Counted from the first letter of the stretch, positions 6,114-51,500 are shown. The stretch is DNA of 64,000 nt from Schmidtea nova (GCA_044892505.1 CM097884.1:20522001-20586000), one strand, 5' to 3'. The notes: a model not told the origin generated them from the sequence alone. A program made the numbers and translations.

Positions 6114-6181
6114 GTCATCATAATCTAAATTAAATGCTATATACGGAAATAGTAATGACATAATGGCTATGATTTAATGAG

Positions 6182-25460: not shown

Positions 25461-26373
25461 TATTTAAGTGACACGAATTAAAATCATGTCTTATGACATC
25501 TAGCGTCAAAAGTTAAAAAAGTAAAAACAAATTAGCCCCTAGAAGTCTTTAATTTATTATTTTACTACATTTTAAGATACTTAATGAAAAATAAAATATA
25601 AATAATATAAATTGCATAATCCCTAGAAGGTTTCAGTCAATAAAGTATTAAAAATAACAAAAATCTACAAAAATTTACAAATTAAAAAATAATCAATAGG
25701 ATCAGATAATAAAATCAATAAATTATTGCATAAGGCATCACATAAAATCTACAAATTAAATAAAAATGCACCACAAAAGAATCAAATCAGTAAAATCAAT
25801 TGTCAATGTTAATAAAATACATCAATAAAGTGCATCAGAATAATTTGGACTAGAATCAATAAGGTTCATCGAACTGATTGTACTTGAATTTCTCATTATT
25901 CTTTGCAATGTATATATTATTAATATATTGATCCTATACCTGTTTGAGCATATTATATATAAGCGTTGATTATTTTTTAATCTAGGAATTTCTACATTTT
26001 GGAATGAAGAATGTAACAAAAGAAATTGCAAATCACCAAAAAAAGGTAAGTGTACATCAGTTAGATAAAACTTTAAAAAACATGGAGCAAATTATTAATT
26101 TTTCATTTGATTAATTTTTATACTTCAATATGTGTAAGTCTTTTTGAAAAAATCAAACATCTAGTCCTATGATTTTTCTGGATGAAAATCTTATTTTCTC
26201 TATTAACATCTCTTATTTTTGTTTTAAAATCTTTTAGAATATTTGAAATTGTAGAAACTACTGTACATGTTCAACTATCGTATTATGTCACTTAATTTCT
26301 TTCCTTTTTTTAAGTTGAGTTTTTCATTTTATTAACTTCATGAATTAAATACAGTAGACAGAAGTGTGCTCCA

Positions 26374-26586
26374 TGACTCATCGTTAAACAAAGACAATGA
26401 CGTCATCGATGAGTCACCCATACCCCCCCGCCCCCCCGATGACTCATTTTTTTCTTTGTTATGACTCATCGATGACGTCATCGATGACTCATCGATGACG
26501 TCATCGATGACTCATCACATGACTCATCGATGACGTCATCGATGACTCATTTCAAATTTGAATTTTATGACGTCATCGATGACTCA
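26374..26586. promoter_or_regulatory. Outer AP-1/CRE array (9 TGA[C/G]TCA + 5 TGACGTCA)
   Basis: Counted directly; sites are mostly in optimal ATGACTCAT / ATGACGTCAT context. Function is inferred. Confidence 0.7.
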
Positions 26587-26680
26587 TTTCAAATTTAAAT
26601 TTTAAATTTCCAAAGGTCAAATAAGGTCAAACCTTCAAACAAGGGTATCATTCGAAAGGTCTTTGAAAGGTCTATCCAAT

Positions 26681-27170
26681 GGTCATACCTTCGAAGGTGT
26701 ATGGAGGGTCCTTAACCTTCAAGGGGTCAAAAACCTTTAACCTTTTACAATCCTTACAAGTTATATATCAAACAAAAGGTAATTGAGAGGTAAGTATGAT
26801 GGTCATACCTTTGAAGGTGTATGGAGGGTCCTTAACCTTCAAGGGGTCAAAAACCTTTAACCTTTTACAATCCTTACAAGTTATATATCAAACAAAAGGT
26901 AATTGAGAGGTAAGTATGATGGTCATACCTTCGAAGGTGTATGGAGGGTCCTTAACCTTCAAGGGGTCAAAAACCTTTAACCTTTTACAATCCTTACAAG
27001 TTATATATCAAACAAAAGGTAATTGAGAGGTAAGTATGATGGTCATACTTTCGAAGGTGTATGGAGGGTCCTGAACCTTGAAAGGGTCAAAAACCTTCAA
27101 CCTTTTTTAATTCTTATAATATGTACATCAAACAAAAGATAATTGAAGGGTGAGTATAATGGTCATACCA
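26681..27170. repeat. 120-bp tandem repeat, ~4 copies, inside the TIR
   Basis: Units start at 26681, 26801, 26921 and 27041 (last one diverged). Mirrored at ~43490-43980. Confidence 0.95.
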
Positions 27171-27194
27171 TTGAAGATTAAATTGTTTTCTTAA

Positions 27195-27396
27195 TGACTC
27201 ATCGGTATGATTTATTTGGATGACTCATTGGGATGACTCATCTACATGATTCATCAGTATGACTCATCAGTATGACTCATCAGTATGACTCATCAGCATG
27301 ACTCATCAGTATGACTCATCAGTATGACTCATCAGTATGACTCATTGGTATGACTCATCGGTATGACTCATCAGTATGACTCATCTACATGACTCA
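27195..27396. promoter_or_regulatory. Inner AP-1 array (14 TGACTCA, mostly 13-bp period)
   Basis: Unit tgactcatcagta repeated. Function is inferred. Confidence 0.7.
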
Positions 27397-28136
27397 TCAA
27401 CAAAAACAAATATTAACAAAGATATTGCAATGCACGTGCAAATTAACAAAGACTTTGCAAAGTGAATGCAAAGAAACAAAGACTAATGAAATATAATTTT
27501 TAATAATAATAATTTTTTGTACAGAGATAACTTGTGTGTGTGTGTGTGTGTTTAAGACAAATTACTGTACTCATTGAACGCGCGTGAAACGCGCGTTCTT
27601 CTTCCTTGTTGTATAAGACAAATCACAGTACGCATTGAACGCGCGTGAAACGCGCGTTCTNNNNNNNNNNNNNNNNNNNNNNNNNNNNNNNNNNNNNNNN
27701 NNNNNNNNNNNNNNNNNNNNNNNNNNNNNNNNNNNNNNNNNNNNNNNNNNNNNNNNNNNNNNNNNNNNNNNNNNNNNNNNNNNNNNNNNNNNNNNNNNNN
27801 NNNNNNNNNNNNNNNNNNNNNNNNNNNNNNNNNNNNNNNNNNNNNNNNNNNNNNNNNNNNNNNNNNNNNNNNNNNNNNNNNNNNNNNNNNNNNNNNNNNN
27901 NNNNNNNNNNNNNNNNNNNNNNNNAAAAAAATATATACCGACTTATATAACTTATAAAAAACTTTATAAAAACCTTATAAAAAATAGAACAATCAAACTT
28001 ATAAATTAACTTATAAAAAAATTTTATAAAAAACCCTGTTATAAAATAGAACAATTAAAAACTAACACATGCAATTAATCGATAAAATTACACAATATAC
28101 AAATAATAATAACAAATAAAAAAATAAATAAAATAT

Positions 28137-31100
28137 TTATTTTTTAAATGAGAAAATAAAATTATTCAAATAATGTTTATNNNNNNNNNNNNNNNNNNNN
28201 NNNNNNNNNNNNNNNNNNNNNNNNNNNNNNNNNNNNNNNNNNNNNNNNNNNNNNNNNNNNNNNNNNNNNNNNNNNNNNNNNNNNNNNNNNNNNNNNNNNN
28301 NNNNNNNNNNNNNNNNNNNNNNNNNNNNNNNNNNNNNNNNNNNNNNNNNNNNNNNNNNNNNNNNNNNNNNNNNNNNNNNNNNNNNNNNNNNNNNNNNNNN
28401 NNNNNNNNNNNNNNNNNNNNNNNNNNNNNNNNNNNNNNNNNNNNNTGTAGACGGCCGATCCTCTAATTCTTCATGTATACGTCTAATGTATGCATTAATT
28501 CTGACCGCTTCTGTTGATTCTCGATCCTCCCAAACATCATCATCAACATCATTATTGTGCACTTCATTTATAATTGTGTTTTCTCCCCGATAATGACCAT
28601 ATGCATAGCTTTTGTTTTTAGACACCCAATTGCGTTTGTCGTCGTTGCAATTGAGTGCCGTTTTTATATTTTTTATACTATATAGTTGGTGATTTTTCGA
28701 ACATATTCGAAACTGCGGGACTTGGTATATCTTATTGTTATTAAAACAATCAAAGTAATTTGAATGGTGAAGCCCCGCAGTAGCTAAACATATACCCTTG
28801 GCTTTCATACTCTCTTCATCGCCAAGTAAACTATAACATTTGGGTCGAAGAAAAACCCACTCTTCATATTTGAAGCCCTTATTTTCGTCCTTAAATTTAC
28901 CTATAACAGAATCCAGATTACGTGAAAATAAGGGATGGTTAGGATTATAATTTGATGTATCCAAGAGTTGATCCCTAACCATAGCAGGCAAAAGAACAGA
29001 CAGTTTACAATTAATGATTTCAAGGAAGAAGGAATCAGTATCTCCTGCGACTATATTTATTTTACAATTAAATTCATTTCTATATTTTTGAAGCTCAACA
29101 TACTGTAATTCATACATTCTAAGTTTAGATAGGTCTAGTACCGTTTGACCTATGTAACTAGGCCTATCTAAACATACTGATTCCTTTCTTAAAAGCACAG
29201 AGATAAGGTTATCGTCTATTTTTGTGGTTTTCCTAAAATATGGACTACTGCTATAGGTAATTAACTTACGTGCAGAATTGCAAAGTCTTAAATTAATACG
29301 TTTTTTAAGATTCTCTACGGTCTTGCCGTAGAGACTGTTATTTAAAAGTTTAAAGTAATTCTTATCCAGCTTCGTGGTGGAAGAAGCTCGCAAAGCAGTA
29401 TTCGTATCCACGTATTTTTTAAATAAAGTAGTTTGCCTAAATCTTATGGCACGATGAATTTTGGTCACAACCACCCCTAACTTCAAAAACATCTGCAAAA
29501 GCCGCCAATGAAGCACATAATTTTTCTTTGGTAAATGCGTCAAAAGAAGCTTTTGCACCTTCGAGCCTGGCGCACACATCTTTTCAGCGGCTACTGGCAA
29601 ATCATCCAGTAAGTCGTGAATAGATGCCGGTATTTCTAAATCAACTTCTATGGTATAACCATAGCTAAGCTGACATAAATCAACCGTAGTGCATTCAAAC
29701 AAGATATTTTCAAGCAAGTGGTCATCCGTGACCCAAACAAAGTCTCCGTCCGGTAAGTTTTGTGAAAGAGCCCAGCCATACAGATTGTTAATATCTATGT
29801 ACAGCAACTCTGTATCTGAGCTCGTTCGCACATGATGTTTATTAACAAAAGTGAGGCCACCCCTGATTCCACCTTCAAAAAAGTTGTACATCTCCATATC
29901 GGTCAAAAGCTCGATAGGAGATTCCAAGGTCATTAAAGCAGAACACCAGCTCATGCCTGGTATGCCTAAAAAATTCAAAGGCTCAAGTCTGTTGTGAGCT
30001 ATACTTTTTGCTCGAAATTGTTGAAAATAATCAGCCAACAGAAATATGTCAAGTTTCATGTAAACCATCATATAATCAAATAATGAGGTACATGAATTTT
30101 CTCTCCATATTTCTTTTGCCTTTTCATAATCAGCAATATCGACACCTTCCCAAATCGGTGGCAATTCATGAGTAGACCTCAAGACTTCTAAAGATGTTGC
30201 TACGTCATATGGAAAAATCCCCTTACTAGTGATAATTGTCCCAATAAATTCCGAAGAAGTAAGTGGGAAAGATGATAAAGTTTTAACAAGACTATTTAGA
30301 GATTCACTTGCAAATTGGTATGAATCTATGAACTTCACTGTGAGTGATCCGATTCTCGCAAAAAGTGCTAGAAACTTTTCACTAGTGACAGGAACACAAC
30401 TAATGTTCCAAGATTCATACTTTGATAATCCGAATTTGAGGATATGATGCAAGTCATATCCCCTTAAATTATGAAATACTATAGGCAAAGTGTGTCTAAT
30501 TTGCCGAGAGACGTTACATTTTTTGCATGCTGCTCCAAGATAAGCACCTGTAAAGTGATCGTGATCTTTAACAGGATTTTCTATTACTTTTTCACACAAG
30601 TAGCAGTGTGTCGCAGCTTGGAAATTTATTATATCAGCATAAGTTAAAATAATCTTCTTATCATAATTTTTATAATAATAAGGTGTTACAATTTTTCTAC
30701 TAATTTGTTCAATTTCGTATAGAAACCGGTCAACACATTCAGTACCAAAAAATGATTTATAAAACTTCTCCCCAGTGAAATTATTGATACATAAAAGCCC
30801 TGCTGAAATGGGCAAGTGTTTTTGAAAGTACTTGGTGTCCCTAGGTAAGATTGCCTCAAAATCGGCATAAATGACAAATGGTGGTGTTACAGTCTTTTTC
30901 CAATCAGTGAATTCCAATAATTTATTCTTAGGCAGAGTGTATAATGTCGTACCTATTTGATTGGCATCACAAAGACCTCGATGACGGTTAAATGTGTCAG
31001 TATTACGAAAGCCATGTAAACACCTAGGGCACCATTTATTATAAATTCTCACTGGGGTTATTGAACTGTTTCGGCAATTAAGAAATCTATTTAAATCATA

Positions 31101-32473
31101 AATAGCTATGTAATGATAAGTTTTTTTAAATTCAAGCAAAAGTAAGTTTATCACTGTTTGTCCAACTATTTTGCTTTTATAAATAATATCTATATACGGA
31201 TGTTTCATCACTTCACTATTATTACTGATGTCAATTAATGCGTTTTCGTCGTAAGATAACACATTAATTGATAATCCTGGATTTAACAATTCAAATCGGC
31301 TAATGTTACTTAGCTTCATTGGCATGTCATTAATGTCATATCTAAGTGATGAAACATCGTAAGAAGAAGGTAGATTTCTAATATTTTCAGGAACTTCGTT
31401 GAAATGTTTAGCTGCTAAAACACTATATAGAAAACAAAGATTGTCGGTGTTGATGACATTGATTACACAATTCTTATGAATAAGAGATTTAGGAGTCTCA
31501 ATAAATTGTTTACCGCTTAACCTGCTTATCTCAGAATATTTGGTCAATACAAAACTTATGTATTCAATTTTATTTATTTTCCAATTCGAACCCTTCTCGT
31601 TCATTTGTGATATTTTTTCATTTAGTATAGTAATACCTTCGTCAACAAAGGTATTACTCCAAAAACGGGCGGAATTTGAAATAACAAAAGACTGATATTC
31701 GTCATCTTTTTCAAATTCCACCATAATACAAAATTGAATTTTAACAGATTTCATTTGAGAAATAATAGAATTTAATTTACTAAGCAAAAGAGAAGGAACT
31801 GAAAGAGTATTTAAATTTAAATGGGCAACATCCATCTTAACGATAATGTGCGATTTATTGAGGTCAGAGTCAACAGTTAAAAGACCTGTACCTATTTGAT
31901 TCACAGAATAAGAGTTGATAATTAAAGGTGTTATTTCCTCCTCATCAGACGAAATAACAATAAGATCAGATTCGTCGTCACTAATATTAATTATTTCGAT
32001 TTTATTAGGATTTTCTATTTTATTGATTTTAGGTAATTTATTAACAATTTCATTTTCTGTTATATGTTTTCGTTTTAATAAATTGGGAACGCTGTCCACA
32101 TTATTTTTTATTAATTTGGGAACGCAGTCCACATTAAAAGAGTTTGGAACAGAGTTCACATTATTTTTTAATAAATTGGGAACGCAGTCCACATTATTTT
32201 TTAATAATTTGGGAACGCAGTCCACATTAGATTGATTATTTTTTAATGTATTTGAAAATATGTTGTTAAAAAGAGTCTTTTTTGATCCTGTAAATTGACT
32301 TAAATGATTTCGATGTTTGCGATAAAAGTTTATATATGTGCTTGTTTCTAAAACTTTGCATATGGGGCATATCAGGTAAAAAACACAATTATATTTTTGC
32401 AAATAATACTTTTCCATAAGACTGTGACAGTCATTATGCAAAGTACTATTGCAGTATGCTGTGTAATATTTGC
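28137..32473 (-). CDS. polB: Protein-primed family B DNA polymerase (pPolB), main exon
   Basis: Pol motifs YIDINNLYG, KLLNNSLYGK and GDTDS; exonuclease motifs YADFE, FHNLRGYD and YMKLD; EndoVII-like CYLC..DHDHFTG..AACKKCN; N-terminal CPIC..H. The frame is open back to a ttag acceptor at 32474-32475. The true stop probably lies in or near the N gap 28181-28445. Confidence 0.97.
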
Positions 32474-32679
32474 CTAAATTAAAAATAAAAACATAAGACT
32501 ATAAGTTTTTTTAAATATTTTTATAGTAATAATTTGTTTATTATATTGATATCATAAAATATCATTGATTAAAATATATATCACATTTAAAGTAATAGAT
32601 TTTCATATCATTGAGTTCATAACAATAAATTAAAATTTTCTTAAAAATTAACAATACTTATAATTACTATACAACTAAT

Positions 32680-33051
32680 ATTGAATTTATACCATAAATT
32701 CCATATTAAATTTATACCATAAATTCCATATTGAATTTATACCATAAATTCCATATTGAAATTATACCATAAATTCCATATTGAATGTATAATATGAAAA
32801 ATAAAATTATTATAAAATCAAAATATATCTTTCTTAAAAATTATTATATAATCAATATACATCTTTCTTAAAAATTATTATTATAAAATCAATATACATC
32901 TTCTTAAAAAATATTATAAAACGAAAAAATATAGTAATTATAAAATGAAATATATATGTCTGTCTTAAAAACAATTATTATACATTCAATATGAAATTTA
33001 TAGTATAAACTCAATATGGAATTTATACTATAAATTCAATATCAGTTGTAT
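32680..33051. repeat. 25-bp tandem repeat (4 copies) with an inverted degenerate copy, flanking a second AT-rich repeat
   Basis: attgaatttataccataaattccat at 32680, 32705, 32730 and 32755; reverse-complement copies at ~32980-33051. Confidence 0.85.
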
Positions 33052-33140
33052 AAAATGAAAAATAATATATATCTTTTGTACACAAAATAAAATCATTACA
33101 AAATTAAAAATAAAATTATTACAAATTAAAAGTAAAAATA

Positions 33141-33761
33141 TTATAAAAATAATAAATATTTACATTTCTGACGACCATTATAACGGTCATCTACCAGATC
33201 TACTGGTGCAGCGTCCATAGAATCATCCCTATTCAGGGGCATATTATCATCCCTATTCAGGGGCATATTATCATCCCTATTCAGGGGCATATTATCATCC
33301 CTATTCAGGGGCATATTATCATCCCTATTCAGGGGCATATTTTCTTCCCTAATAAGGGGCATATTTTCTTCCATATTCAGAGGCTTAAAATTTTCGGTAT
33401 TTTCAAAATCATTTCTTTCTTCAGCTTTAAAATGAAAATAAATTTATAAATAATAAAATAATACAATAAATTACCATCAATGTCGACATTTAACCGCTCA
33501 TTTCTGCTTGCTGCCTCGTATTGATTTAAAATTGAAACATTTATTACTGAAATAATAATATTATTTTAATTAAAAATTATTTTAATTTTTACCATTTTTG
33601 TTCTCCTTTTCATTTTTAAAATTAATTGGCTTTGCTATATTATCAAACATGTTGCCTAAAGAAATTTACATGTTATAAAAACAATAAATTAAAAATAAAT
33701 TAATATTACCAATTTTGTTCATCTTTATCATTTTCTTGATATTTTCTGAAATATTCTGCAT
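33141..33761 (-). CDS. Four small spliced exons (33761-33710, 33655-33593, 33546-33475, 33424-33164) encoding an acidic repeat region; either the pPolB N-terminus or a stand-alone short protein ending at 33141
   Basis: Three GT-AG phase-1 introns (54, 46 and 50 nt) give one open frame MQNISENIKK...DIDAEERND...(MPLNRDDN)n...GRQKC. The donor at 33163 is phase-compatible with the polB acceptor. Confidence 0.7.
33224..33372. repeat. 24-bp coding tandem repeat (MPLNRDDN, ~6 units)
   Basis: atcatccctattcaggggcatatt repeated. Confidence 0.9.
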
Positions 33762-34241
33762 ATTTTTAATATTAATTTGAAAAAGTTTTTGTTTAAATTG
33801 TGACGAAATAATGAAAACATAGGGTATATATCACGTTTATTACAAACTTTATTCACGAGCCAATCACAAGCGAGATAGGGTAGAAAAAGTATGTGTGTAC
33901 ACTGAGTAAGTATGTTAAAAATCTCTCACCAAGTATGTGTGTTAATAATTCACTCACCAAGTATGAATCATGTCTTTGTTATATTGCACGATGCATGTCG
34001 GATGCAACGATACAAAGACACTACGTGACTAAAGTTTTTATGAAATATCTTATGGGTGTAGATGCAGATGTGAATACACCCAAGTTGATTTATATGTGAA
34101 ATAATTGAGTGTCTGCATGCGTGCCTGCATGCAATTTCTTTATAATTATCGAAAAGTATAGCTAGATGGATGTTAATCTGCAAATTGGATGTGAATTCTG
34201 CAAGTTTATAAAAAATAATAAATAAAACACAAATAATACAT

Positions 34242-34643
34242 TTATTGTTTTAAATAATCAATTACACCAGACAAGCAACCTTTATATGCACACATACTAT
34301 GGTCTTTATATGGACATAAGATATTTTCTGGAACATCTTCAAATTCTTTAAAATTATATTTAATTAATCTCAATTTCGGGAAATATTTCTTCAAAACTTG
34401 CAACTTTTCATTATCTGTAACATAGAATATAGCTCCTTTATTTTCAATATCATTCATAATGCATTTTGGACAAAAATAATCTTGTCCTTCAAACGATTCT
34501 ATACGATCAGGCCAGAAAGATAAATCACTGTATATATAATACAAGGGTGTGAAAATACTATTTACATTCATAATACATAATTCCTTAATAATTGTTCCTC
34601 CAATATCATTATAACCGTACATATCAATAAAATAACAAGTCAT
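34242..34643 (-). CDS. 133-aa accessory protein, possibly DEDD/RNase H-fold derived, with a C-terminal Cys/His cluster
   Basis: Clean ATG ORF in the operon-like array; N-terminal YFIDMYGY...IIKEL and C-terminal CPYKDHSMCA. Family call is tentative. Confidence 0.65.
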   Translation of the reverse strand: MTCYFIDMYGYNDIGGTIIKELCIMNVNSIFTPLYYIYSDLSFWPDRIESFEGQDYFCPKCIMNDIENKGAIFYVTDNEKLQVLKKYFPKLRLIKYNFKEFEDVPENILCPYKDHSMCAYKGCLSGVIDYLKQ

Positions 34644-34675
34644 TTTTTACAATAACATTTATTAAACTAAATTGT

Positions 34676-35051
34676 TTATAACATTGATTTTAGCCATGCA
34701 AGGCAATGTTGTCCACAAGTGATTGTTAATGGATGTTGATACCGAATTCTATTATACACAATAGGTTTACCAATAGTTTGTAATTTTCGAACAAGTAAAT
34801 TTGGATAATAATATCCAAAGGGATCAAATACATGTATCCGATCCGGTTTCACGTAAACCGCAATCCAATGTTCACCGCCCAAAGTAGAAGTGTGAGTATT
34901 TACAATGATGGCTTGATTCATTTTCAAATAAGGAATTTTATCTAACGGAAAAACTCCAATAAACTGGTTTCCCAATAGTTTTTTACCTTGTTGTAATACC
35001 TGAATAGAACTAATTAAAATAATAAATTATTCAATTAAAAACTTACTCCAT
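34676..35051 (-). CDS. Adenain-like cysteine (maturation) protease; join(35051-35047, 35009-34676)
   Basis: GEHWIAV, FDPFG and YQ....CGQHC catalytic motifs. A 37-nt GTAAGT...TAG intron restores MDSIQVLQQGKKLLGNQFIGVFPLD. Confidence 0.92.
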
Positions 35052-35088
35052 AATAATAGAAATAATAATAACTTTGGTTATTTATACT

Positions 35089-35169
35089 GTTTGAGCTCTG
35101 CTCAAACCAATACTGCTCAAATCAGCAATGTTTGAGCTCAAACCAATAATGTTTGAGCTCTGCTCAAAC
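35089..35169. repeat. Three GTTTGAGC(TCT)GCTCAAAC palindromes between the MCP stop and the protease start
   Basis: 35089-35107, 35130-35143 (no loop) and 35151-35169; a half site lies near 35114. Confidence 0.85.
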
Positions 35170-36384
35170 CAGTACTGTTCGATTGGCAGTAATTTGTACT
35201 TCATTTTCAAACAATCCATATATAATTACATGAACCGGTTCATCAATGGGTTTTGCAAACTTTATATCTAGCCTTAAATTACCGTTTTGTGGGATTTGAC
35301 TTTGATTTAAATCGAAATCGGGAGCCAGAACAAATGTAAAGAATGGATATTTTGCTTTAAATTCATCCAGACTTATACCACAATTCAAGTTTTTATCCAA
35401 ATATCCTAAATTTCGGACAAGACTTTGCATATATGTGGCACTAAAATTATCATTTTCAAAATCTTGAGTATAAGTTTCTCGATAATCGGTATTTTTCGAC
35501 AATGATAATGAAGTTACATTAAAGTGTTTGAATGAAGATGAAGATTCAGCATATGATCCGTTATATTGATTTTCAGTTTGAAAAGCTACAAGAATGAAAT
35601 TAGGCATTCTTCTATCTCCAAATATTTGCTCCTTGTAAAATGATGATGCACCTTTCCCAATAGCAAACGATACGATTTCTTTGGATTTTATCGGATAAAT
35701 TGCATGTTTGCTATTTAAACCAATTTGATGACCGGCCAAAACTGAAGATTCACACCGAACTCTTCTTACCATTAATTTAGCGTCTACTAATTGGAGTATT
35801 GGTTTCCCAGTTGCCGATTTCAGTGATAATGCAGAATCAGATCGCTTCAATCTAATATGTACATTAACTCCGGGAAGTAAGTATTTAGGTTGATCCATAA
35901 AATCAAGTTGTAATGATGAACACATGTTAAAAAGTTTCGATCCCTTGATCCACTTTTTTCTATCGTCACTTGCACCATATCCCATTGGAGTAAGACAAGT
36001 TTCTTTTGAATCGTTCGTATAATTTAAAATAGTTTCGATTATTGCCTTGTGTGCATATGTATTGTTTCCACCCTCGATTTTTATATTATTAAATCCAAGA
36101 ATCACATCTTTGAAAAGTGTATGAAACAAGTAATTATTAGGTACTACATCACTCGCATCAACTAATTTATTTTTATCTTTATCTACAACTTTGACCGTAA
36201 CGGATAATAACGTATCGTTCAAATCCAAATATTCGGTTGCCGATCCATTAATGTAAAATTCAACATCATTTCTACTATCTGTAATAGAATTCATTGGAAA
36301 CACATCTTCAAACACCCCATATTCAATAACTGCTTGGGGGCTTGGTCGATCAAAAATACATAATTCAGATTTACCGCAAATCAT
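35164..36384 (-). CDS. Major capsid protein (double jelly-roll, Polinton PY/hexon-like)
   Basis: 406 aa; KSELCIF..P.Q, VEFYI.G...YLDL..T.L.V.VKV and C-terminal GNLRLDIKF....V.VIIYG patterns typical of Polinton MCPs; expected position. Confidence 0.9.
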   Translation of the reverse strand: MICGKSELCIFDRPSPQAVIEYGVFEDVFPMNSITDSRNDVEFYINGSATEYLDLNDTLLSVTVKVVDKDKNKLVDASDVVPNNYLFHTLFKDVILGFNNIKIEGGNNTYAHKAIIETILNYTNDSKETCLTPMGYGASDDRKKWIKGSKLFNMCSSLQLDFMDQPKYLLPGVNVHIRLKRSDSALSLKSATGKPILQLVDAKLMVRRVRCESSVLAGHQIGLNSKHAIYPIKSKEIVSFAIGKGASSFYKEQIFGDRRMPNFILVAFQTENQYNGSYAESSSSFKHFNVTSLSLSKNTDYRETYTQDFENDNFSATYMQSLVRNLGYLDKNLNCGISLDEFKAKYPFFTFVLAPDFDLNQSQIPQNGNLRLDIKFAKPIDEPVHVIIYGLFENEVQITANRTVLV

Positions 36385-36761
36385 TCTTCAAATATTGTTC
36401 CATGACCTTTCATTCGTTTGTTTATACGTCTTCGTTTACGTCTTGGTCCTACTGGTACAGGTTCCGGTTCATTTTTTGTAAACATATTTGTAATTGAAGG
36501 AATCATTTTTGTTACAGTAGGTATAGCTTTATTAACTTCGGCCAAAGCATTTGTTTTCAATGATGGTAATATTTTATTATCTTTCATGATAACATCCTTG
36601 GCAGTATTGAATCCAAAACTACCCAGTCGCTTAAGTAGTGGAAGTGCAAATCTACCAATAGTTTTCAACCAACCTGATCCATATTGTTTACCTATAAAAT
36701 ATGGTAATTCGCCACCAGTTTGGCTATTACTGTACAAAGAAACTATATCTGGATTACTCAT
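36381..36761 (-). CDS. PZ / pVI-like core protein
   Basis: QTGG..PYFIGKQYGSG followed by the amphipathic helix WLKTIGRFALPLLKRLG and a basic tail RRKRRR. Confidence 0.75.
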   Translation of the reverse strand: MSNPDIVSLYSNSQTGGELPYFIGKQYGSGWLKTIGRFALPLLKRLGSFGFNTAKDVIMKDNKILPSLKTNALAEVNKAIPTVTKMIPSITNMFTKNEPEPVPVGPRRKRRRINKRMKGHGTIFEE

Positions 36762-37779
36762 GATGTTTTCGAAAATGTAGAGTCAAATGAGTTTTCGAAT
36801 TTTTTGGAAAGTTTATTAAATTACCTTTATCATCTCGGATATTTATTTCTATATTGTTTATACAGGATGTTGAAACAGTTACATACATTGGATTTTCAAC
36901 TTGTATTTGAACAACCTCATCCTGTTCATATTTTTCAATCCATACCGATTTCAGTAAAGGAACCAATGAATCTCCAACAATTATAGGTTCAATAATGTTA
37001 CTGTAAATGAACATTTGCTGATGAAGTTTAATTATTTTCGGTTTATTTATTCCAGTAGTGAATTTTCCATCTTGAGCATATGTTGCTTTCAATAAACCCA
37101 ATGTTTTTACTAGGTTATTATCAAAAGTTATTTCGCTAACATCTGGATTCAAACTGAATTTGAAGTAAGTATCATCTAACAATTCCACCGACTTAAAAAT
37201 ACTTGCACAATTTAGAATTAAATATGATTTCATTTCATCCAGTTTCGATATGTATAAATTATCGGCAAATGTATGGATAAATACAGAATCAGCCTTATAC
37301 TCCATCTTTAATCTAATATTTTCAGTAACTGGACCATCTATACCATAATATGGTAACGGTATCTTGTATGTATCTGTAGGACTTACAATACTCTGTTTCG
37401 TTAATCCCATTCTTTTCGCCATTGCCAAAGTATCAAATGTTATAGTGAAGGGAAAATGATCACAGGTAAAATAAATAGATTGTCTATCACTCAACATTTG
37501 AGCAATATCATCGGCAGGATTAGATATGTCAACTTCACAAAATTGATTGTTAATAATCAAATTTTTATATTTTGTATGTATAGTTTTCTTTTTGTATCGA
37601 ATTTCAGCTTTACTGTAAAATGGAAATGGATTATACACAAATGTAAAGTCTAAGAGAGCGACTTCCCAAATCCCGTCCAAATACATTGGATTTTGGAGAT
37701 TGACCATGAAATTACTTGCTGTATTATCTGGATGTATGTCTGGACAACTGTTGCTAGGTAGAATCATATAAAAATTCAT
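36754..37779 (-). CDS. Minor capsid protein (penton-like, single jelly-roll)
   Basis: MNFYMILPSNS..NT.SNF...L...WEVAL; MFIYSNII....VGD..VPLL; NIEINIRD..G..I.F. Start at 37779 (ATGA overlap with the integrase stop) is preferred over 37806. Confidence 0.9.
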   Translation of the reverse strand: MNFYMILPSNSCPDIHPDNTASNFMVNLQNPMYLDGIWEVALLDFTFVYNPFPFYSKAEIRYKKKTIHTKYKNLIINNQFCEVDISNPADDIAQMLSDRQSIYFTCDHFPFTITFDTLAMAKRMGLTKQSIVSPTDTYKIPLPYYGIDGPVTENIRLKMEYKADSVFIHTFADNLYISKLDEMKSYLILNCASIFKSVELLDDTYFKFSLNPDVSEITFDNNLVKTLGLLKATYAQDGKFTTGINKPKIIKLHQQMFIYSNIIEPIIVGDSLVPLLKSVWIEKYEQDEVVQIQVENPMYVTVSTSCINNIEINIRDDKGNLINFPKNSKTHLTLHFRKHHE

Positions 37780-38820
37780 TTTACTAGGTTTTTTGACGAT
37801 ATCCATGATGGTTCCTTATATCCATGCCACTTGACATAGTATTGTTTATCCTTACCTACCATTTTAGTTTTCAATATTTTTTGAATTCTAAATATTGTCG
37901 GTGGAGGTATAACTTGTAATTCTTGTTCATAGAATTTCCCACTGACTATATTGTTATCAGAGTCAGAAATAGTATACATGACAGGATTCTGGACTGTGTT
38001 GACCTTCGATATTTTAAATACCTCATCACTCCAATTACTATCAAAATTTTTAATGAATGGCGATGCACTAATTTTACTAATTCGAACATGATCACCTATT
38101 TTATATTTTGGTTTCTTGATTATTGTATCACTCACGATATTTTCAGTATTAACTACTTCTGCAGGTTTCCTGCCATTTATACCTCGATGAGCAGAATGAT
38201 TATAACTATGGATCATTTGTGGTAAAACATTAATCCATGTTTTATTACCTTGATGTACAAAATACTTTTTGAGCCGATCTCGTAATGTACGATTAAATCT
38301 CTCGACATGAGCGGCTTTGAATTGCGAGAATACCGAATAATGATTGATTCCCTTGATAACTTCCTTGACTTTACTGTTGTAAAATTCCTTACCTAAAAAA
38401 TATTAAATCAATAAATTATAATTAAAATTTACCCAAATCGGTTTGTAAATTTGTTGGACGATCCTTTTTCATCATTGCTTTGATCGCGATTGCCATATCA
38501 TTACCAGATTTCGATTTTACTGCGATTGCCCGCGCAAAACGACTGTAAACATCAATACATGTTAAAATATACTTGTATCCCTTGTTAATTTTTGAATACG
38601 GAATCATTTCCATCAAATCCATTTGCCACAAATCATTGATTCTATACGTTTTATATGATCTAGTTGGAAACCGTTTCAGCATCGGTTTGTTTAGACTGTA
38701 TGCAAGTTGCCCCGATAACCAGCTTTGTGTCTGTTGTTTCGACTTCTGTACTTTTTTCCTTAACTTTTCGACTCCACCGAAACCGGCTTCGTCTTTCGGG
38801 TTCGTCCAGATCTTCTCCAT
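37776..38820 (-). CDS. Retroviral-type DDE integrase with C-terminal chromodomain; join(38820-38433, 38392-37776), 334 aa
   Basis: WQMDL (D1), LTCIDVYSR, QTDLG|KEFYN (D2, rejoined across a 40-nt GT-AG intron), HVERFNRTL (E), YNHSAH, chromodomain IQKILK...YYVKWHGY..PSWI. Confidence 0.95.
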
Positions 38821-38875
38821 TACAACAAGAAGATTTAAAGTTTAAATTTAAATTAGGTAATGATTGACCCATTGT

Positions 38876-39403
38876 TTATGACGTTCTTTTTCCCAATAAA
38901 CCAGCACCACCTAATAACGATAAAGCTAGGGGTAATAATGCAGCAATAAACCCTCCTTGTTGTTTATATATTATTTTACGCATAAGTTTTTTATTTTTTG
39001 TTTTTACAAGTGATAACAATGGTTTTTTATGCTTGTTCAAAACCCGACGATTAGAAGGAGTTAGATTCATTTTACCTCGTACGACTTTAATTAAAATAGC
39101 GAGTAAATCATCAATGACGTAATTGGGAAACGACTGAAGAATACCCATTCTTCTAGCACTGGGGGCTTTTAGCAATGCATTAAAAAACGGAAAACTCCGA
39201 TGATGTATTTGTTTAGGATTAGATTTCAAAATAGGGGGAATTTGATTTTGTTTGGGAAAATTATCCATAATTAGTTTTTTCGAAGGAGTATAACTTGTTT
39301 TAGAAACGGGTTTCGAAACTGATTTCTTTGTTTTCTTTGTTTTCTTCATTGTTTTTCTTGCCTTTATCAAGCGCTCAAACTTTACTCTAGATTTCATTAA
39401 CAT
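38876..39403 (-). CDS. Basic core protein with pX/mu-like C-terminus
   Basis: Lys-rich. Ends KQQGGFIAALLPLALSLLGG, resembling adenovirus pX GGFLPALIPIIAAAIG. Confidence 0.75.
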   Translation of the reverse strand: MLMKSRVKFERLIKARKTMKKTKKTKKSVSKPVSKTSYTPSKKLIMDNFPKQNQIPPILKSNPKQIHHRSFPFFNALLKAPSARRMGILQSFPNYVIDDLLAILIKVVRGKMNLTPSNRRVLNKHKKPLLSLVKTKNKKLMRKIIYKQQGGFIAALLPLALSLLGGAGLLGKRTS

Positions 39404-39423
39404 GATTACTACTGTAAATATAT

Positions 39424-40047
39424 TTAACTTTGTTTATAAACCATGGCTCCTTCCTTGTTAAAAATATCTGTTCTAACTCTTAAATCATCACTGCATTGTT
39501 GCGTAAAATCCAAGAAAAGATATCCATGAGGAGCTTTTGTAGCATCCTGAAACGCATCAATCAAGAAATTCCGATTAGAGGGGTATGCTTGTCTTGCCAG
39601 AAAATCAATAACTGTTGCATCACGAGGATTTTTAAAAACAACAAGATATTGAACATTTAAATTACGAGTTCGATGACTACCACCCTGATGAAATAAATTC
39701 TGAGTAATAAAAATAACTGTAACACCTTTGTGTCTAGCGATTTTCGTAAATAAATTATTAAAATCCTTTTCTTTATTTGCTTCTTGATACAAGTCATCAA
39801 TAATAATCACATCCCATTCTCTTAATCTAGATGACCAGTTTTTATCGAAACCTTTTATGATTGTCATTTTTATTTTACAAAACTGATCTTGAGTCATACC
39901 GCTTTCGTCGTCAGCACCCCTATGCCAATAAATTTTATTAAACTTTGATTTGAATAATTTAGATTGTAATAATTTACAAACAAATAAAGTTTTTCCGCTC
40001 CCGCTCGGGCCGACAATTTGGTACACTGCATCATTTCTTAATTCCAT
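39424..40047 (-). CDS. A32/FtsK-like DNA packaging ATPase
   Basis: Walker A GPSGSGKT, Walker B IIIDD, motif C ARH.GVTVIFITQNLF. Confidence 0.95.
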   Translation of the reverse strand: MELRNDAVYQIVGPSGSGKTLFVCKLLQSKLFKSKFNKIYWHRGADDESGMTQDQFCKIKMTIIKGFDKNWSSRLREWDVIIIDDLYQEANKEKDFNNLFTKIARHKGVTVIFITQNLFHQGGSHRTRNLNVQYLVVFKNPRDATVIDFLARQAYPSNRNFLIDAFQDATKAPHGYLFLDFTQQCSDDLRVRTDIFNKEGAMVYKQS

Positions 40048-40136
40048 TTTTGTAATTATTTATTAGTATTATTATTGTTTATATTGATTAAAATATTAAT
40101 TATCTCTTTGTTGTTAGATTTAAAATATTTTTAATA

Positions 40137-40604
40137 ATGATTAGAAACATTAATTACAAGGGTAAGACAGATGTGTCGCACATGATATTTCCAACTGGGA
40201 AACCACAGCAAATTGTAGATAGAAGTGGAAAATACCCAATAATATACTTTAAGACAGGCAGATATAGAATAATGGGATGCAAGGAATTTATTAGTGATGA
40301 AAAAGTAAAGTCTCACGATTTAACAATACAATCGATAACTGTGACTGCAGATTTAGGATTTATTTGTAATTTAAATGAGTTATCTAAATTGATTCCATGT
40401 GTTTATGAACCAGAATTATTTCCAGCTTTAAGATATACAAAATATAATCCAATGTGTGTCAATATTTTTGCTAGTGGTAAAGTAGTCATATTAGGATTAA
40501 AAAATAAAGACTATGCTAATATAGTTGATAATATTATTAACGATATAAAATCAATTATAGAAGATAAAGCCTTTGTTGATTTCATACTAACATGTGACTC
40601 ATGA
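40137..40604 (+). CDS. TATA-binding-protein-like protein (155 aa, core-only)
   Basis: Repeat 2: IQSITVTADLGF..L..L....VYEPELFPALRY..NPMCVNIFASGKVVILGLK, matching the TBP C-terminal repeat. Repeat 1 is shortened: IRNINYKG...GKPQQI...PIIYFKTGRYRIMGCK. Confidence 0.88.
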   Translation: MIRNINYKGKTDVSHMIFPTGKPQQIVDRSGKYPIIYFKTGRYRIMGCKEFISDEKVKSHDLTIQSITVTADLGFICNLNELSKLIPCVYEPELFPALRYTKYNPMCVNIFASGKVVILGLKNKDYANIVDNIINDIKSIIEDKAFVDFILTCDS

Positions 40605-40738
40605 CTGCAATATTCATGCAATGGAAATGCACGATTCTGATTGGTCGAGTGTGTATCGATAGAATAAAGACATGTTGTGCATACTTTATTCTTATTGGTT
40701 GAAAGTTGTTCATTTCGTACATGATGTGTGTTTCTATC

Positions 40739-40748
40739 GTATATATAC
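40739..40748 (+). promoter_or_regulatory. Putative TATA element upstream of the 40782 gene; ATTGG (CCAAT) boxes near 40641 and 40694
   Basis: gtatatatac 34-43 nt upstream of the ATG. Confidence 0.4.
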
Positions 40749-40781
40749 TAAGAACATTCGTTCATAATTTAGATTTTAAAA

Positions 40782-41367
40782 ATGTGTTTAAAAGAAACTA
40801 TGTTAAAAAGTGGTAAGGATTTTAATTAATTCTTTTCAATTTTAATATAATTTCTTTTTAGAAAAATTAATGAATGTCCTATATGGAAAGCTGGAGGAGA
40901 TGTTCCCGAATTTAATGACATCCCTGACTTATACGGCACCAGAACTCTTTCCGTATAAGATTCAGGTGCTGACTGGAATTGATGTCAATCAGCTCATCCT
41001 CGATCATCGGGCAAATAATCTCAATGAATTGCCAGTGGTAGCCGAGCACTTTCTCTGTGCATATAAGTGCGGAAATTGCGTGGAGAGGATCCGCCGATTC
41101 AATATTTGGCTCCTCAGAAACGCATTGAAGGAATTCGAGAATCAAAACCTCGAAACAATTGAGGAAGAAGATATGAAGGAGTCCTGGCCAAATTCGACTC
41201 CGGATCAATCTGATTGCCCAACTCTGGATGGGCCATATCCTATCGAATCGGATGAGCCAATGGAGTCTCCCGAATCTCCAGATTGTGCGGAATGCCACCG
41301 TAAGGCAGAGGATTGTGATGATAAAATAGGTTCGCAATCTCTTGGTGGTGATCCGTCAGACATTTAA
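40782..41367 (+). CDS. 178-aa acidic, Cys-containing accessory protein; join(40782-40812, 40862-41367)
   Basis: G|GTAAGG...TTTAG 49-nt phase-1 intron joins MCLKETMLKS to EKLMNVLY. Coding exon is GC-richer than its flanks; CGNC and CAEC; D/E/P/S-rich tail. Confidence 0.75.
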
Positions 41368-41937
41368 ATGTTGTTATTTTTTAGTTTAATGTCATTTTAG
41401 TTTGGTTATTTTTTAGTTTAATAAAAGTTTTTTAATGATTTTAGTTTTTATTGATTTTAGTTTTTTAGTGATTTTAGTTTTTTAGTGATTTTAGTAATAG
41501 TTTTTAAGTATTAGTTTTTACTTGACTTTAAGTTATTATTTTGAATTTAATTAATTATTTTAACTTTAAGTATTTAGTATTAAACTTTTTATTTACTAAG
41601 ATTAAAAAATAGTATTTGAATAAAAATTATTGTGAAATAAATTATTGTGATATAAATAAATACATATTTTATCCATATTTTATTATTGTGATATAAATAA
41701 ATACATATTTTATCCACTAACAGATCCTTACTATCAGTACATTAGTAGCAGAACATCTTTTGTTATGGTTTTTATGTGCAAAAGCTCATTACTTGAACAC
41801 ACACACACACACACACACTTACAACAAAGACATGCATAACGCGTGCAATACAAATGCATGATTGTGATTGGACAAAGGCATCCAGTCCTCACTATAAATA
41901 CAAAGTCATTTCTACAAATTTGTCACAATTTTTAAAA

Positions 41938-42354
41938 ATGGATTCACGAAAACGAGGTTATGATGTCAGCGAAGAAAGATTATTCCCGACTGAGGTGAAA
42001 CCAGTCCAGATGTATTATGATAGCCGAATCTATTTCTTGGTAGAAGAAATTCCGTTTCGCTTATCTTATCCCGTAAAATTAACAAAGTCGTTGTTTGATA
42101 ATCTATCTATTATTATTGATAAAGAGGATATTATCGCACTAAATAGAGTATTTTCAAAAATCAATGTGAATTTAATTTGTAAAGAAACGATGTATATCAA
42201 TAACAGGAAGACTCGTTTCCATAATGCTTATCAAACAATCGATTTCATTGATCAAGAACACTGGTTCGTTACGATAATCATTCAAGGATACAAGGTTGAT
42301 AAAAAGGAAGTGACAACTCCAATTTGGAGAGTTGATAATGCACGATACGCCTAA
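41938..42354 (+). CDS. 138-aa hypothetical protein, possible OB-fold ssDNA-binding protein
   Basis: ATG 41938 lies downstream of ATTGG (~41866) and TATAAATA (41893). Beta-rich C-terminus WFVTIIIQGYKV...PIWRV. Family call is weak. Confidence 0.65.
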   Translation: MDSRKRGYDVSEERLFPTEVKPVQMYYDSRIYFLVEEIPFRLSYPVKLTKSLFDNLSIIIDKEDIIALNRVFSKINVNLICKETMYINNRKTRFHNAYQTIDFIDQEHWFVTIIIQGYKVDKKEVTTPIWRVDNARYA

Positions 42355-42415
42355 TTGTTATTTAATAAATTTTACTATGAACAAATTTAGTTTTTTATTT
42401 TATTTTGTATTTAAA

Positions 42416-43018
42416 ATGAAACTGCTTATAACCATGTTTGTATTTTTATTGTGTGTTCAAAATACTGATGGAGAACAGGCTTTAGAAGCTTGCCAATCAA
42501 CCCATCCGTTTAGAAGAGAAGATAGTACTTGTGCGAGTTATAATGAAATATGTGTTTACTCAAACACTGAATGCAATCAAATAAAATTACAATGTGATCA
42601 ATGTCCTTCAAAAAAAAATAATTTGATTAATAATGATATTGAAAAAATAATTAGCAAAATAAAATTACAATGTCCTTCAAAAAATGATTTGATTAATAAA
42701 GAAATGGAAAAAATAATGATGAAAATAATGATGAAAATTGTTGAAAGTTTGAAATGTACGAATCAAACAATTGTTAAAAAACAATATGAAGTCAGATACC
42801 AAAATCAAACAGTTGAAAGCGAAAAAACATCGATAGTTTTACATTACATAAGTTTATTCATATTAATAATGATCTTGATATTGGCAACATCGATAAGGTT
42901 AGAGAATATTAATAAGAATAAAATTCCTGTAAATAATGTTCCTATGAATAATATTCCTAGTAGTAATAATTTTGAATCCAAATTTTGTACACGGTCGCAA
43001 CAATATATTTATAAATAA
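42416..43018 (+). CDS. 200-aa type I membrane glycoprotein with a Cys-rich ectodomain
   Basis: Signal peptide MKLLITMFVFLLCVQNTDG, Cys cluster, internal IKLQ..CPSK duplication, two NQT sequons, TM segment IVLHYISLFILIMILILATSI, short cytoplasmic tail. Confidence 0.8.
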   Translation: MKLLITMFVFLLCVQNTDGEQALEACQSTHPFRREDSTCASYNEICVYSNTECNQIKLQCDQCPSKKNNLINNDIEKIISKIKLQCPSKNDLINKEMEKIMMKIMMKIVESLKCTNQTIVKKQYEVRYQNQTVESEKTSIVLHYISLFILIMILILATSIRLENINKNKIPVNNVPMNNIPSSNNFESKFCTRSQQYIYK

Positions 43019-43049
<31 letters not shown>

Positions 43050-43052
43050 TAA

Positions 43053-44295
43053 ACAACAAGGGAAGAAGAACGCGCGTTTCACGCGCGTTCAATGAGTACA
43101 GTAATTTGTCTTAAACACACACACACAAGTTATCTCTGTACAAAAAATTATTATTATTAAAAATTATATTTCATTAGTCTTTGTTTCTTTGCATTCACTT
43201 TGCAAAGTCTTTGTTAATTTGCACGTGCATTGCAATATCTTTGTTAATATTTGTTTTTGTTGATGAGTCATGTAGATGAGTCATACTGATGAGTCATACC
43301 GATGAGTCATACCAATGAGTCATACTGATGAGTCATACTGATGAGTCATACTGATGAGTCATGCTGATGAGTCATACTGATGAGTCATACTGATGAGTCA
43401 TACTGATGAATCATGTAGATGAGTCATCCCAATGAGTCATCCAAATAAATCATACCGATGAGTCATTAAGAAAACAATTTAATCTTCAATGGTATGACCA
43501 TTATACTCACCCTTCAATTATCTTTTGTTTGATGTACATATTATAAGAATTAAAAAAGGTTGAAGGTTTTTGACCCTTTCAAGGTTCAGGACCCTCCATA
43601 CACCTTCGAAAGTATGACCATCATACTTACCTCTCAATTACCTTTTGTTTGATATATAACTTGTAAGGATTGTAAAAGGTTAAAGGTTTTTGACCCCTTG
43701 AAGGTTAAGGACCCTCCATACACCTTCGAAGGTATGACCATCATACTTACCTCTCAATTACCTTTTGTTTGATATATAACTTGTAAGGATTGTAAAAGGT
43801 TAAAGGTTTTTGACCCCTTGAAGGTTAAGGACCCTCCATACACCTTCAAAGGTATGACCATCATACTTACCTCTCAATTACCTTTTGTTTGATATATAAC
43901 TTGTAAGGATTGTAAAAGGTTAAAGGTTTTTGACCCCTTGAAGGTTAAGGACCCTCCATACACCTTCGAAGGTATGACCATTGGATAGACCTTTCAAAGA
44001 CCTTTCGAATGATACCCTTGTTTGAAGGTTTGACCTTATTTGACCTTTGGAAATTTAAAATTTAAATTTGAAATGAGTCATCGATGACGTCATAAAATTC
44101 AAATTTGAAATGAGTCATCGATGACGTCATCGATGAGTCATGTGATGAGTCATCGATGAGTCATCGATGACGTCATCGATGAGTCATAACAAAGAAAAAA
44201 TGAGTCATCGGGGGGGGCGGGGGGGTATGGGTGACTCATCGATGACGTCATTGTCTTTGTTTAACGATGAGTCATGGAGCACACTTCTGTCTACT
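43053..44295. repeat. Right terminal inverted repeat (1243 bp)
   Basis: Reverse complement of the left TIR. AP-1 arrays at 43264-43465 and 44074-44274. Confidence 0.95.
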
Positions 44296-44375
44296 AAATA
44301 CACACAATTTAGAAATTATATGAGTTGCTTTCATGACGTTAATGAATAAATAAAATTAGTTATCTTATCATTAAC

Positions 44376-50804: not shown

Positions 50805-51500
50805 AGAAGAAAACAAGTACAATGTAAGTGGACAATGTACGAGACACCGTTATCCCTTTATGTCCCCGAATCTAAAAGAAAGTCTCAAGAATGGAAACTA
50901 CCAGGAGAAAGAAGCTCACTGAAAATGCAGTCCTCAACTTGCCACCGAAAGGCTCTCATGCTGACGGTGTTTTGGGACGTCAATGGTATTATTCTGACTG
51001 ACTTTGCTGAATCCGGCGTGAAGATCAATAGTTCTTACTACTCCAACATCGTGCAGCAAGCAAGGAAGGCACAACGCAAGAGCAGAGTGTGTGATCTCTA
51101 TTTGTTACACGATAATGCTCCCATCCACACCAGCAGCGTTTCCATGGCCAAAATTGAGCGTTGCGGACTCAATTTGCTTCCCCATCCACCATACAACCCC
51201 AATTTGGCTCCCTCCGATTTTTTCCTGTTTAACCATCTTAAGAAGCATCTGCGGGGCCAGGTGTTTGCCAACAAGCATGATTTGAGAGCAGCCGTGGAGA
51301 GTTTTCTGGGAGAAAAGCCTCCAGAATTCTTCAAAAACGCCTTCGAAAACTTCGTTCATCACTGGGAAAATTGTGTCAGTGCAGAAGGAAATTATTTTGA
51401 GAAATTATGGCTATTTACCATGCTTGTTCTAAATACAAAGTTTTGTGTTGGTATCTTAAGTCTTTCTATTTTAGTCTCACGAATTATTGGGCGCACCACG
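50805..51500 (+). mobile_element. 5'-truncated mariner (DD34D-type) element
   Basis: MLTVFWD, LLHDNAPIH, LPHPPYNPNLAPSDFFLF and EGNYFEK; the first catalytic D region is decayed (TMYET). Ends ttattgggcgcaccacg followed by TA. Confidence 0.88.

Follow-up and report, generated by a model that had tools for sequence, protein, structure and literature searches.

A Conserved TBP-Fold Protein, Probably a Minimal TATA-Binding Protein Paralogue, in the Gene Set of a Polinton/Maverick Lineage

Introduction

TRF2 of animals (also called TLF or TBPL1) is a TATA-binding protein (TBP) paralogue that has an altered DNA-binding surface and serves a subset of promoters; it is a host gene, and its product has two full lobes. 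Viruses, too, carry proteins of this kind. At late promoters the vTBP proteins of beta- and gamma-herpesviruses, which are nuclear DNA viruses, recognize a variant TATA box and recruit host RNA polymerase II (Pol II) (PMC12529657), and the Nucleocytoviricota have TBP-like proteins in which the TFIIB-contacting positions are about 40% conserved, these viruses usually bringing a TFIIB-like protein and an RNA polymerase as well (PMC7221094). Here we describe a TBP-like gene carried by a Polinton/Maverick element of Schmidtea nova. The element lies within a stretch of 64,000 nucleotides (GCA_044892505.1 CM097884.1:20522001-20586000), which we refer to throughout as the window and from whose first letter all positions are counted.

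The protein encoded in the window, at 155 amino acids (aa), differs from each of these systems. Like TRF2 it is a TBP relative with an altered DNA surface, but the family to which it belongs has a truncated N-terminal lobe and only three of the four intercalating Phe residues of TBP, and we found no TRF2-specific similarity: all of the named matches in phmmer and Foldseek searches are to TBP itself. The best viral fold matches are to TBP-like proteins of the Nucleocytoviricota (for example those of Heterosigma akashiwo virus 01, of mimivirids and of the asfarvirus B263R type; E 6e-8 to 1e-4). Those proteins run to 190-500 aa, and in contrast to them the family described here conserves the pair of Glu residues that contacts TFIIB in 96-98% of its members, in an element that lacks both TFIIB and RNA polymerase. 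In function, the nearest analogues are the herpesvirus vTBPs (ORF24 of KSHV, BcRF1 of EBV, UL87 of HCMV). We see no sequence relationship to them and claim no membership in that group; they are multidomain proteins of 600-1000 aa, with the TBP-like domain in the middle, that bind Pol II directly, by the N-terminus, and not via TFIIB, and the fold matches to BcRF1 and U58 are weak (E about 4e-3, TM 0.34-0.39).

TBP lies outside the canonical core gene set of Polintons, a point on which our analysis agrees with a preliminary description of this DNA that was made from the sequence alone. The same description was aware of no TBP characterized in such an element, and here it needs correcting. The legend to Figure 5 of Starrett et al. 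2021 (PMC8502044) contains the label "TBP" for a mid-size linear double-stranded DNA virus or element with an adintovirus-like PolB, a label that probably marks a gene of the kind described here in an element of the same broad group; that legend gives a label, without analysis of structure, conservation or promoters. Beyond it, our literature search returned no link between TBP and Polintons, and a 2024 survey of these viruses is silent on TBP. What is new here is the placement of an eight-nucleotide box, TATAAACA, upstream of the morphogenesis genes of these elements. We consider it almost certain that the element encodes a TBP-fold protein that is under selection, and slightly better than an even chance that the gene is a minimal TBP paralogue belonging to the gene set of one Polinton/Maverick lineage.

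Results

A TBP Saddle with One Reduced Lobe

The TBP-like gene occupies positions 40137..40604 on the plus strand and is an intact open reading frame (ORF), stop codon included, of 155 aa; the preliminary description had placed it correctly, and the four short strings it quoted are all in the translation. Over residues 62-134, and only there, the protein matches Pfam family PF00352, scoring 55.3 bits where the cut-off is 22.9 (E=6e-15). A phmmer search of the Protein Data Bank (PDB) returns 35 TBP entries, headed by the archaeal structures 2z8u (4.7e-19) and 1mp9 (2e-15), with eukaryotic TBPs next. Because residues 57-140 of the query match either lobe of each TBP among these entries, that part of the protein corresponds to one complete TBP lobe. 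We do not read an archaeal ancestry into the higher archaeal scores, since the matched region is short and its composition is AT-biased.

The structural model confirms the assignment and extends it to the whole protein. An AlphaFold2 model calculated from an alignment of 58 relatives has a pLDDT of 94.7 and a pTM of 0.84, and its 44 best Foldseek matches in the PDB are all TBPs (TM 0.6-0.72); the matches ranked below them are unrelated, with E above 1e-2. The Foldseek alignments are about 170 columns long, which is the entire TBP core, and the model therefore comprises two tandem lobes in one saddle. By fold and by profile the protein is a member of the TBP superfamily, as had been proposed from the sequence, but it fails two canonical features of that superfamily, the full topology of both lobes and the set of four Phe.

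The complete lobe is the C-terminal one (residues 57-155; 40305..40601, plus strand), which holds E91/E93, F95, F111, R99, C107 and N109. In the model it consists of a strand (63-72), a helix (79-83), four further strands (88-90, 97-100, 107-111 and 115-121) and a long helix (127-153), in the canonical order S1-H1-S2-S3-S4-S5-H2. The N-terminal lobe (residues 1-52; 40137..40292, plus strand), defined from DSSP analysis of the model, hhalign and a merged alignment, is reduced. Its strands at 2-10, 25-28, 35-38 and 42-48, with a short helix at 54-58 behind them, represent S1, S3, S4 and S5; helices H1 and H2 are missing both from the model and, as deletions, from the alignment, and one strand is lacking relative to canonical TBP. 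The Pfam scan gave no match to residues 1-52. With hhalign, the N-terminal lobe alone aligns through S3-S5 with canonical lobes at a probability of 79-92% (E 1.6e-5 and 6.9e-7), and a profile of the family compared with one of 26 canonical TBPs aligns residues 26-124 (probability 99.3%), leaving a gap in the family where N-lobe helix H2 is expected. The earlier picture of two repeats with the first one shortened is thus sustained, with Foldseek alignments that span the whole core and an N-lobe of four strands without a long helix. The deleted helix H2 is the site of the regulator-binding basic patch of eukaryotic TBP, whose N-lobe surfaces serve TFIIA, NC2, Mot1 and TAF1 (PMC7221094).

Altered Residues on the DNA-Reading Surface

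To map individual residues we merged the family alignment with a named plant TBP (P0086), and counts were taken over 96 full-length members of the family and the canonical set; side-chain geometry was taken from alignment only. The yeast numbers given below are those we take to be equivalent, going by how the four invariant Phe and the I/V/L positions are spaced in the canonical set. Three of the four intercalating Phe persist, as had been supposed: F38 (99% of the family; yeast F116), F95 (100%; yeast F190) and F111 (100%; yeast F207) align with the second, third and fourth, and the first, yeast F99, falls in a gap beside P23 (98%). Also kept are N4 (97%; yeast N69), the canonical Asn of N-lobe strand S1, and the Glu pair E91 and E93 (96% and 98%; yeast E186 and E188), which occupies positions C.L3.2 and C.L3.4, the TFIIB-contacting Glu positions of TBP (PMC7221094). 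The acidic stirrup that the preliminary description had read from a single sequence is conserved in the family.

Positions on the DNA-facing surface have changed, and have changed almost uniformly. The canonical Asn of C-lobe strand S1 (yeast N159) is replaced by S66 (99%), and the two S5 Thr residues by M46 (100%; yeast T124) and L119 (80%; yeast T215). A further cluster comprises R99 (96%), C107 (97%) and N109 (100%), which stand in place of a canonical Ile/Val (yeast I194), Val (yeast V203) and Leu (yeast L205), respectively; I194, V203 and L205 are the residues mutated in the yeast variant TBPm3, whose TATA specificity is altered (PMC1636458). Cellular and archaeal TBPs, which have the same saddle fold, are built on a core of about 180 aa, as opposed to about 150 aa here, with four Phe and two full lobes, and it is only the C-lobe that the family retains complete, with both of its Phe; here, moreover, the gene is carried by a mobile element. 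Judged from the alignment, the family has kept its saddle, its TFIIB dock and three Phe wedges out of four, and the surface that would read DNA is systematically and near-invariantly altered.

A Conserved Family Linked to the Packaging ATPase Gene

A word-indexed protein search found 94 relatives of the TBP-like protein, the top 81 of which are short proteins with 35-75% identity to it; all come from metagenome or raw-read assemblies and none from NCBI or UniProt. In an exhaustive HMMER search (1262 matches) the short full-length family ranks first and two-lobed TBPs follow. Altogether 95 database proteins, 136-183 aa in length, align with the TBP-like protein from end to end, down to about 40% identity. 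Among the matches for the TBP-like family, and likewise for the capsid family of this lineage, there is no named NCBI or UniProt entry.

The genomic setting of these relatives resembles that in the window. We examined a 22-kb contig (L001), a 20-kb sequence (L002) and 16-kb contigs from several assemblies (L005-L008). In all six the TBP-like gene adjoins the gene for the packaging ATPase, an arrangement that the preliminary description had suggested looking for in other genomes, and the three relatives that we looked up each belong to an independent syntenic element that also encodes PolB, capsid protein, integrase and ATPase. Identities between the window's ORFs and those of these relatives are 72-76% for the ATPase, 60-67% for the integrase, 54-64% for the capsid protein, 55-65% for PolB and 48-53% for the TBP-like protein. 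Further out, a more distant TBP-like protein (P0038) and a capsid match (P0300) share a longest contig size of 10,087 nt, and a second such pair (P0074 and P0324) one of 5,485 nt, which suggests that the TBP-like and capsid genes co-occur there too. Several of the relatives are 16-kb contigs that rank second or third largest in small assemblies. In L005-L008 a Bcl-2 family gene (PF00452), absent from the window element, lies between the ATPase and TBP-like genes at about 9398-9775; its presence is a hint that the host of that relative is an animal, and the only hint of a tie to the adintoviruses, a proposed animal-tropic family.

Close copies are uninformative about selection, the TBP-like genes of L005-L008 and those of L002-L004 differing by 0-1 nt, and we therefore compared distant pairs of elements. 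Between these, pS is saturated (0.74-0.82), and pN is 0.30-0.38 for the TBP-like gene, 0.24-0.30 for the capsid gene and 0.17-0.22 for the ATPase gene. With a pN well below the saturated pS and near that of the capsid gene, the TBP-like gene can be judged to experience purifying selection comparable with that on a core virion gene. This disposes of the idea that the gene is a recent, functionless capture of a fragment of host TBP. Apart from the short length of the protein nothing speaks for such a capture, and against it stand 95 intact full-length relatives, as little as about 40% identical, and syntenic positions in elements whose synonymous sites are saturated while pN remains low; we regard it as refuted by the conservation data, and the gene is neither a one-off acquisition nor neutrally evolving.

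A TATA-Like Box Ahead of the Morphogenesis Genes

To survey promoters we took the 100 nt upstream of every listed ORF in four elements (the window element, L001, L002 and L005). The 8-mer TATAAACA has 34 exact copies in these elements, and 21 of the 34 lie 30-55 nt, mostly 33-42 nt, before an ATG on the same strand. As a control, 168 permutations of its letters were counted at the same spacing; they give a mean of 0.39 such sites, and the runner-up, with 9, is a shifted reading of the TATAAACA motif itself. Between -55 and -30 it is the commonest 8-mer (20 of 67 ORFs), and the ninth position, immediately after the box, is A in 29 of 34 copies. Over the window as a whole, which is AT-rich (GC about 27%), the excess is modest, 18 copies against 11 expected. 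A literature search for the 8-mer yielded unrelated primer and promoter strings only.

In the window element six sites fall between 34673 and 40083, all of them in the leftward gene block and on the strand of its genes. Reading in the direction of transcription, the first (40076..40083, minus strand) is 36 nt upstream of the ATPase ATG, within the 89-nt divergent intergenic region (40048..40136) that separates the ATPase gene from the TBP-like gene; the second (39431..39438, minus strand) is 35 nt upstream of a conserved 175-aa gene and falls within the final codons of the gene for the ATPase; the third (38961..38968, minus strand) is upstream of the integrase region, at a position conserved in L005. 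The box at 36855..36862 (minus strand) stands 101 nt ahead of a 126-aa gene, a spacing found also in L005 and L001 and conserved, at about 101 nt, for that gene family. The remaining two lie 42 nt upstream of the capsid ATG, inside the preceding ORF (36419..36426, minus strand), and 37 nt upstream of a 133-aa gene (34673..34680, minus strand). All four elements have the box before the ATPase gene, the capsid gene and the gene of the 133-aa family. At the capsid gene the first T of the box occupies a third codon position, and the codons concerned specify four different amino acids (R, G, P and S); such constancy of a third base implies constraint at the level of DNA. None of the four elements has the box upstream of the TBP-like gene, nor is it present before the Bcl-2 or PolB genes, and there is none in the terminal repeats of the window element.

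The TBP-like gene has motifs of another kind near it. A Y-box, or inverted CCAAT-type motif, GATTCTGATTGG, is found at 40633..40644 (plus strand), just 3' of the TBP-like stop codon, and a Y-box motif adjoins the TBP-like gene in L001 and L002 as well. Sites of this type were recorded at 40633-40644 and 41860-41871 in the window, at 5694-5701 in L001 and at 6149-6173 in L002. Several of the accessory genes beside the TBP-like gene have a canonical TATA box, some with a Y-box-type motif ahead of it. Around the TBP-like gene and the accessory genes, the pairing of Y-box with canonical TATA has the look of a second promoter class, of host type. An AATAAA at 40663..40668 (plus strand), 59 nt after the TBP-like stop codon, is a possible polyadenylation signal.

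The Element and Its Surroundings

The element extends over 26353..44295 (17,943 bp, with AG...CT termini). Its left terminal inverted repeat (26353..27545, plus strand) is an arm of about 1.2 kb, and the aligned blocks of the right one (43115..44295, minus strand) are 100% complementary to it, so that the TBP-like gene is inside the inverted repeats, as originally described. A 6-bp target-site duplication, AAATAC, flanks the whole (26347..26352 and 44296..44301). With genes for PolB, protease, double jelly-roll capsid protein, rve integrase and ATPase, as well as inverted repeats and a target-site duplication, this is a complete Polinton/Maverick.

The leftward genes account for most of this set. 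The PolB gene (28137..32441, minus strand) is a 1434-codon ORF that contains a run of N; it shares 55-65% identity with its counterparts in L001, L002 and L005, and the assignment was made through these relatives, which carry PF03175, the Pfam scans of the window's own ORF having detected no DNA_pol_B_2 family. In its N-terminal half (30495-32441, minus strand) it has a long extension relative to the PolB proteins of the relatives (1183-1191 aa in L005-L007) and gives a weak Endonuclease VII-type match of 22 bits, slightly below the cut-off. An adenain-type cysteine protease gene (34676..34975, minus strand) matches PF00770 with 27.2 bits (cut-off 21.3). The major capsid protein (35164..36384, minus strand; 406 aa) was identified as a double jelly-roll from an AlphaFold2 model (pLDDT 88.9) whose top Foldseek matches are the capsid proteins of an iridovirus, PBCV-1, mavirus and Sputnik (E down to 9e-16). 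We identified no penton protein among the proteins of the element. Two conserved genes of the morphogenesis block, of 126 and 350 aa (36381..37806, minus strand), have orthologues in L001, L002 and L005. The 350-aa gene (36754-37806) is single here; L005 has three tandem paralogues of it at 3961-6985 (329, 345 and 332 aa).

The integrase gene (37776..38820, minus strand) combines an rve core (PF00665, 35.9 bits, cut-off 32.6) with a chromodomain (PF00385). It is interrupted by a single frameshift, in two frames covering 340 of the 341 residues of the L005 integrase; the other genes that we examined showed no break. In another frame over the 5' integrase region is a 70-aa ORF (38660-38872, minus strand) with counterparts in L005, L002 and L001 (28-42% identity), which may represent an upstream start or an overlapping gene. 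The 175-aa gene (38876..39403, minus strand), recognized by comparison with the relatives, lies beside the gene for an A32/FtsK-type packaging ATPase of 207 aa (39424..40047, minus strand; PF04665, 28.8 bits, cut-off 22.8). On the strand of the TBP-like gene are three accessory genes of 165, 166 and 228 aa (40870..43018, plus strand), of which the 166-aa one is represented by orthologues in L001 and L002. At 40783-40870 (plus strand), in front of the 165-aa ORF, an ATG is followed by a GT...AG stretch that may be a short 5' exon and intron. Pfam scans of the element's ORFs revealed no TFIIB-like or RNA polymerase gene, and the precomputed Pfam matches of the relatives include no TFIIB-like domain.

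The terminal repeats contain tandem short units (26400-26604 and 27194-27399, mirrored on the right) with the strings TGACTCA, which is AP-1-like, and TGACGTCA, which resembles a CRE-like bZIP site. A 120-nt repeat in 4.2 copies occupies 26679-27176 of the left repeat. The flanks of the element are rich in transposons and include a Penelope-like reverse transcriptase with a GIY-YIG domain (6182-7396, minus strand), a mariner-type transposase fragment (50775-51503, plus strand) and a small unit with inverted repeats of 151 nt at its ends (22485-23651). An Rfam scan of the window gave no matches.

Discussion

The reading we favor, with a probability of about 0.55, is that the TBP-like protein is an element-encoded initiation factor of altered specificity that would act at private promoters by way of host TFIIB and Pol II. 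The conserved Glu pair, in an element with neither TFIIB nor RNA polymerase, implies a partner supplied by the host, and the more general proposition, that the protein acts in transcription initiation through a TFIIB-type partner, seems to us probable. We suggest that the protein is made from a host-type promoter, that it would bind a private TATA-like box, for which TATAAACA(A) is the best candidate, and that once bound it would recruit host TFIIB and Pol II to the genes of the element, largely escaping host regulators that act via the N-lobe. DNA binding, recruitment of TFIIB and the pairing of this factor with this box are what we infer from residues and motifs; that TATAAACA is the target is a tentative proposal, which we rate below the role in initiation and as somewhat less likely than not. 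The presence of the box before the morphogenesis genes and its absence from the TBP-like gene would amount to an early-to-late switch, and one may imagine a two-step program in which the accessory genes, the mini-TBP among them, are expressed from host-type promoters, after which the mini-TBP redirects TFIIB and Pol II to TATAAACA(A). We put this program forward as a speculation that is plausible and somewhat doubtful. The suggestion of an altered-specificity basal factor, already made in the preliminary description, has been strengthened by the Arg, Cys and Asn at the TBPm3 positions and by the existence of a private TATA-like box, and remains a suggestion.

Several observations weigh against this reading, or at least against some part of it. 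The specificity changes are in the C-lobe, which normally reads the 5' (TATA) half of the site, yet it is in its 3' half that the box deviates. TATAAACA contains a canonical TATAAA core, which host TBP could plausibly read; this core also fits the forkhead-type pattern RYAAAYA, and TATAAA is a known variant of the poly(A) signal. Several of the boxes fall at the 3' ends of upstream ORFs. In the window copy the TBP-like gene has no defined promoter, and the frameshift in the integrase gene means that this copy of the element may be inactive, although its terminal repeats are identical.

Some of these points lead directly to an alternative, in which host factors read the TATAAACA boxes as ordinary TATA boxes or forkhead-type sites and the TBP-like protein acts on other promoters of the element or on host genes. 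The canonical core and the TATA-like spacing fit this, as does the fact that the accessory genes have canonical TATA and Y-box motifs, which indicates that the element uses host factors too. However, a plain TATA box needs neither a C at position 7 nor an A (29 of 34) at position 9, these bases are kept even within coding sequence while synonymous sites elsewhere are saturated, and the box and the TBP-like gene occur together in all four elements examined. We therefore think it unlikely that the boxes are simply read by the host. The retained Glu pair suits yet another proposal, that the protein is a decoy or dominant-negative TBP that ties up host TFIIB or sits on host TATA boxes, with no productive initiation, and in this way damps host or antiviral transcription; the missing N-lobe surfaces for TFIIA, NC2, Mot1 and TAF1 and the loss of one Phe would be in keeping with it. 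Yet the DNA-facing residues R99, N109, S66 and M46 are not degenerate but fixed to particular new residues, at 96-100% each, an argument that the DNA target is a defined one; the elements have a specific box of their own; and a pure sink for TFIIB has no need of three conserved intercalating Phe. A decoy is accordingly not what we would expect the protein to be.

It is also conceivable that a DNA-bending protein of the TBP fold serves the element outside transcription, at the terminal repeats or origin in protein-primed replication, or in condensing or packaging the genome. The gene does adjoin that for the packaging ATPase in all of the elements. The Glu residues that contact TFIIB/TFB are nonetheless 96-98% conserved, a degree of conservation that is lost in bacterial proteins with TBP lobes and no TFIIB partner (PMC7221094), and the terminal repeats of the window element are devoid of the TATAAACA box; we hold a role of this kind to be distinctly improbable. 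An initiation factor that works through host TFIIB at promoters of the element remains the reading to which we give preference.

What the TBP-like protein may tell us about TBP is a matter apart from its targets. It represents a natural "minimal TBP" in which the N-lobe has lost both helices and the saddle and TFIIB dock nevertheless persist, and it bears on the question of which parts of TBP serve initiation and which serve regulation. If the two-step program is correct, this would be the smallest natural TBP known to work with host TFIIB. In metagenomes we count at least 95 members of this family, and with no curated name among its matches it is invisible to routine annotation.

To our knowledge, gene expression in Polintons/Mavericks, including any virus-like ordered expression, is essentially uncharacterized. 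A conserved TBP encoded by the element, with a changed DNA-reading surface and a candidate private box at the virion genes, offers a concrete handle on it. Should the two-step program hold, Polintons would have, in the mini-TBP and TATAAACA(A), their first described pair of transcription factor and cognate promoter.

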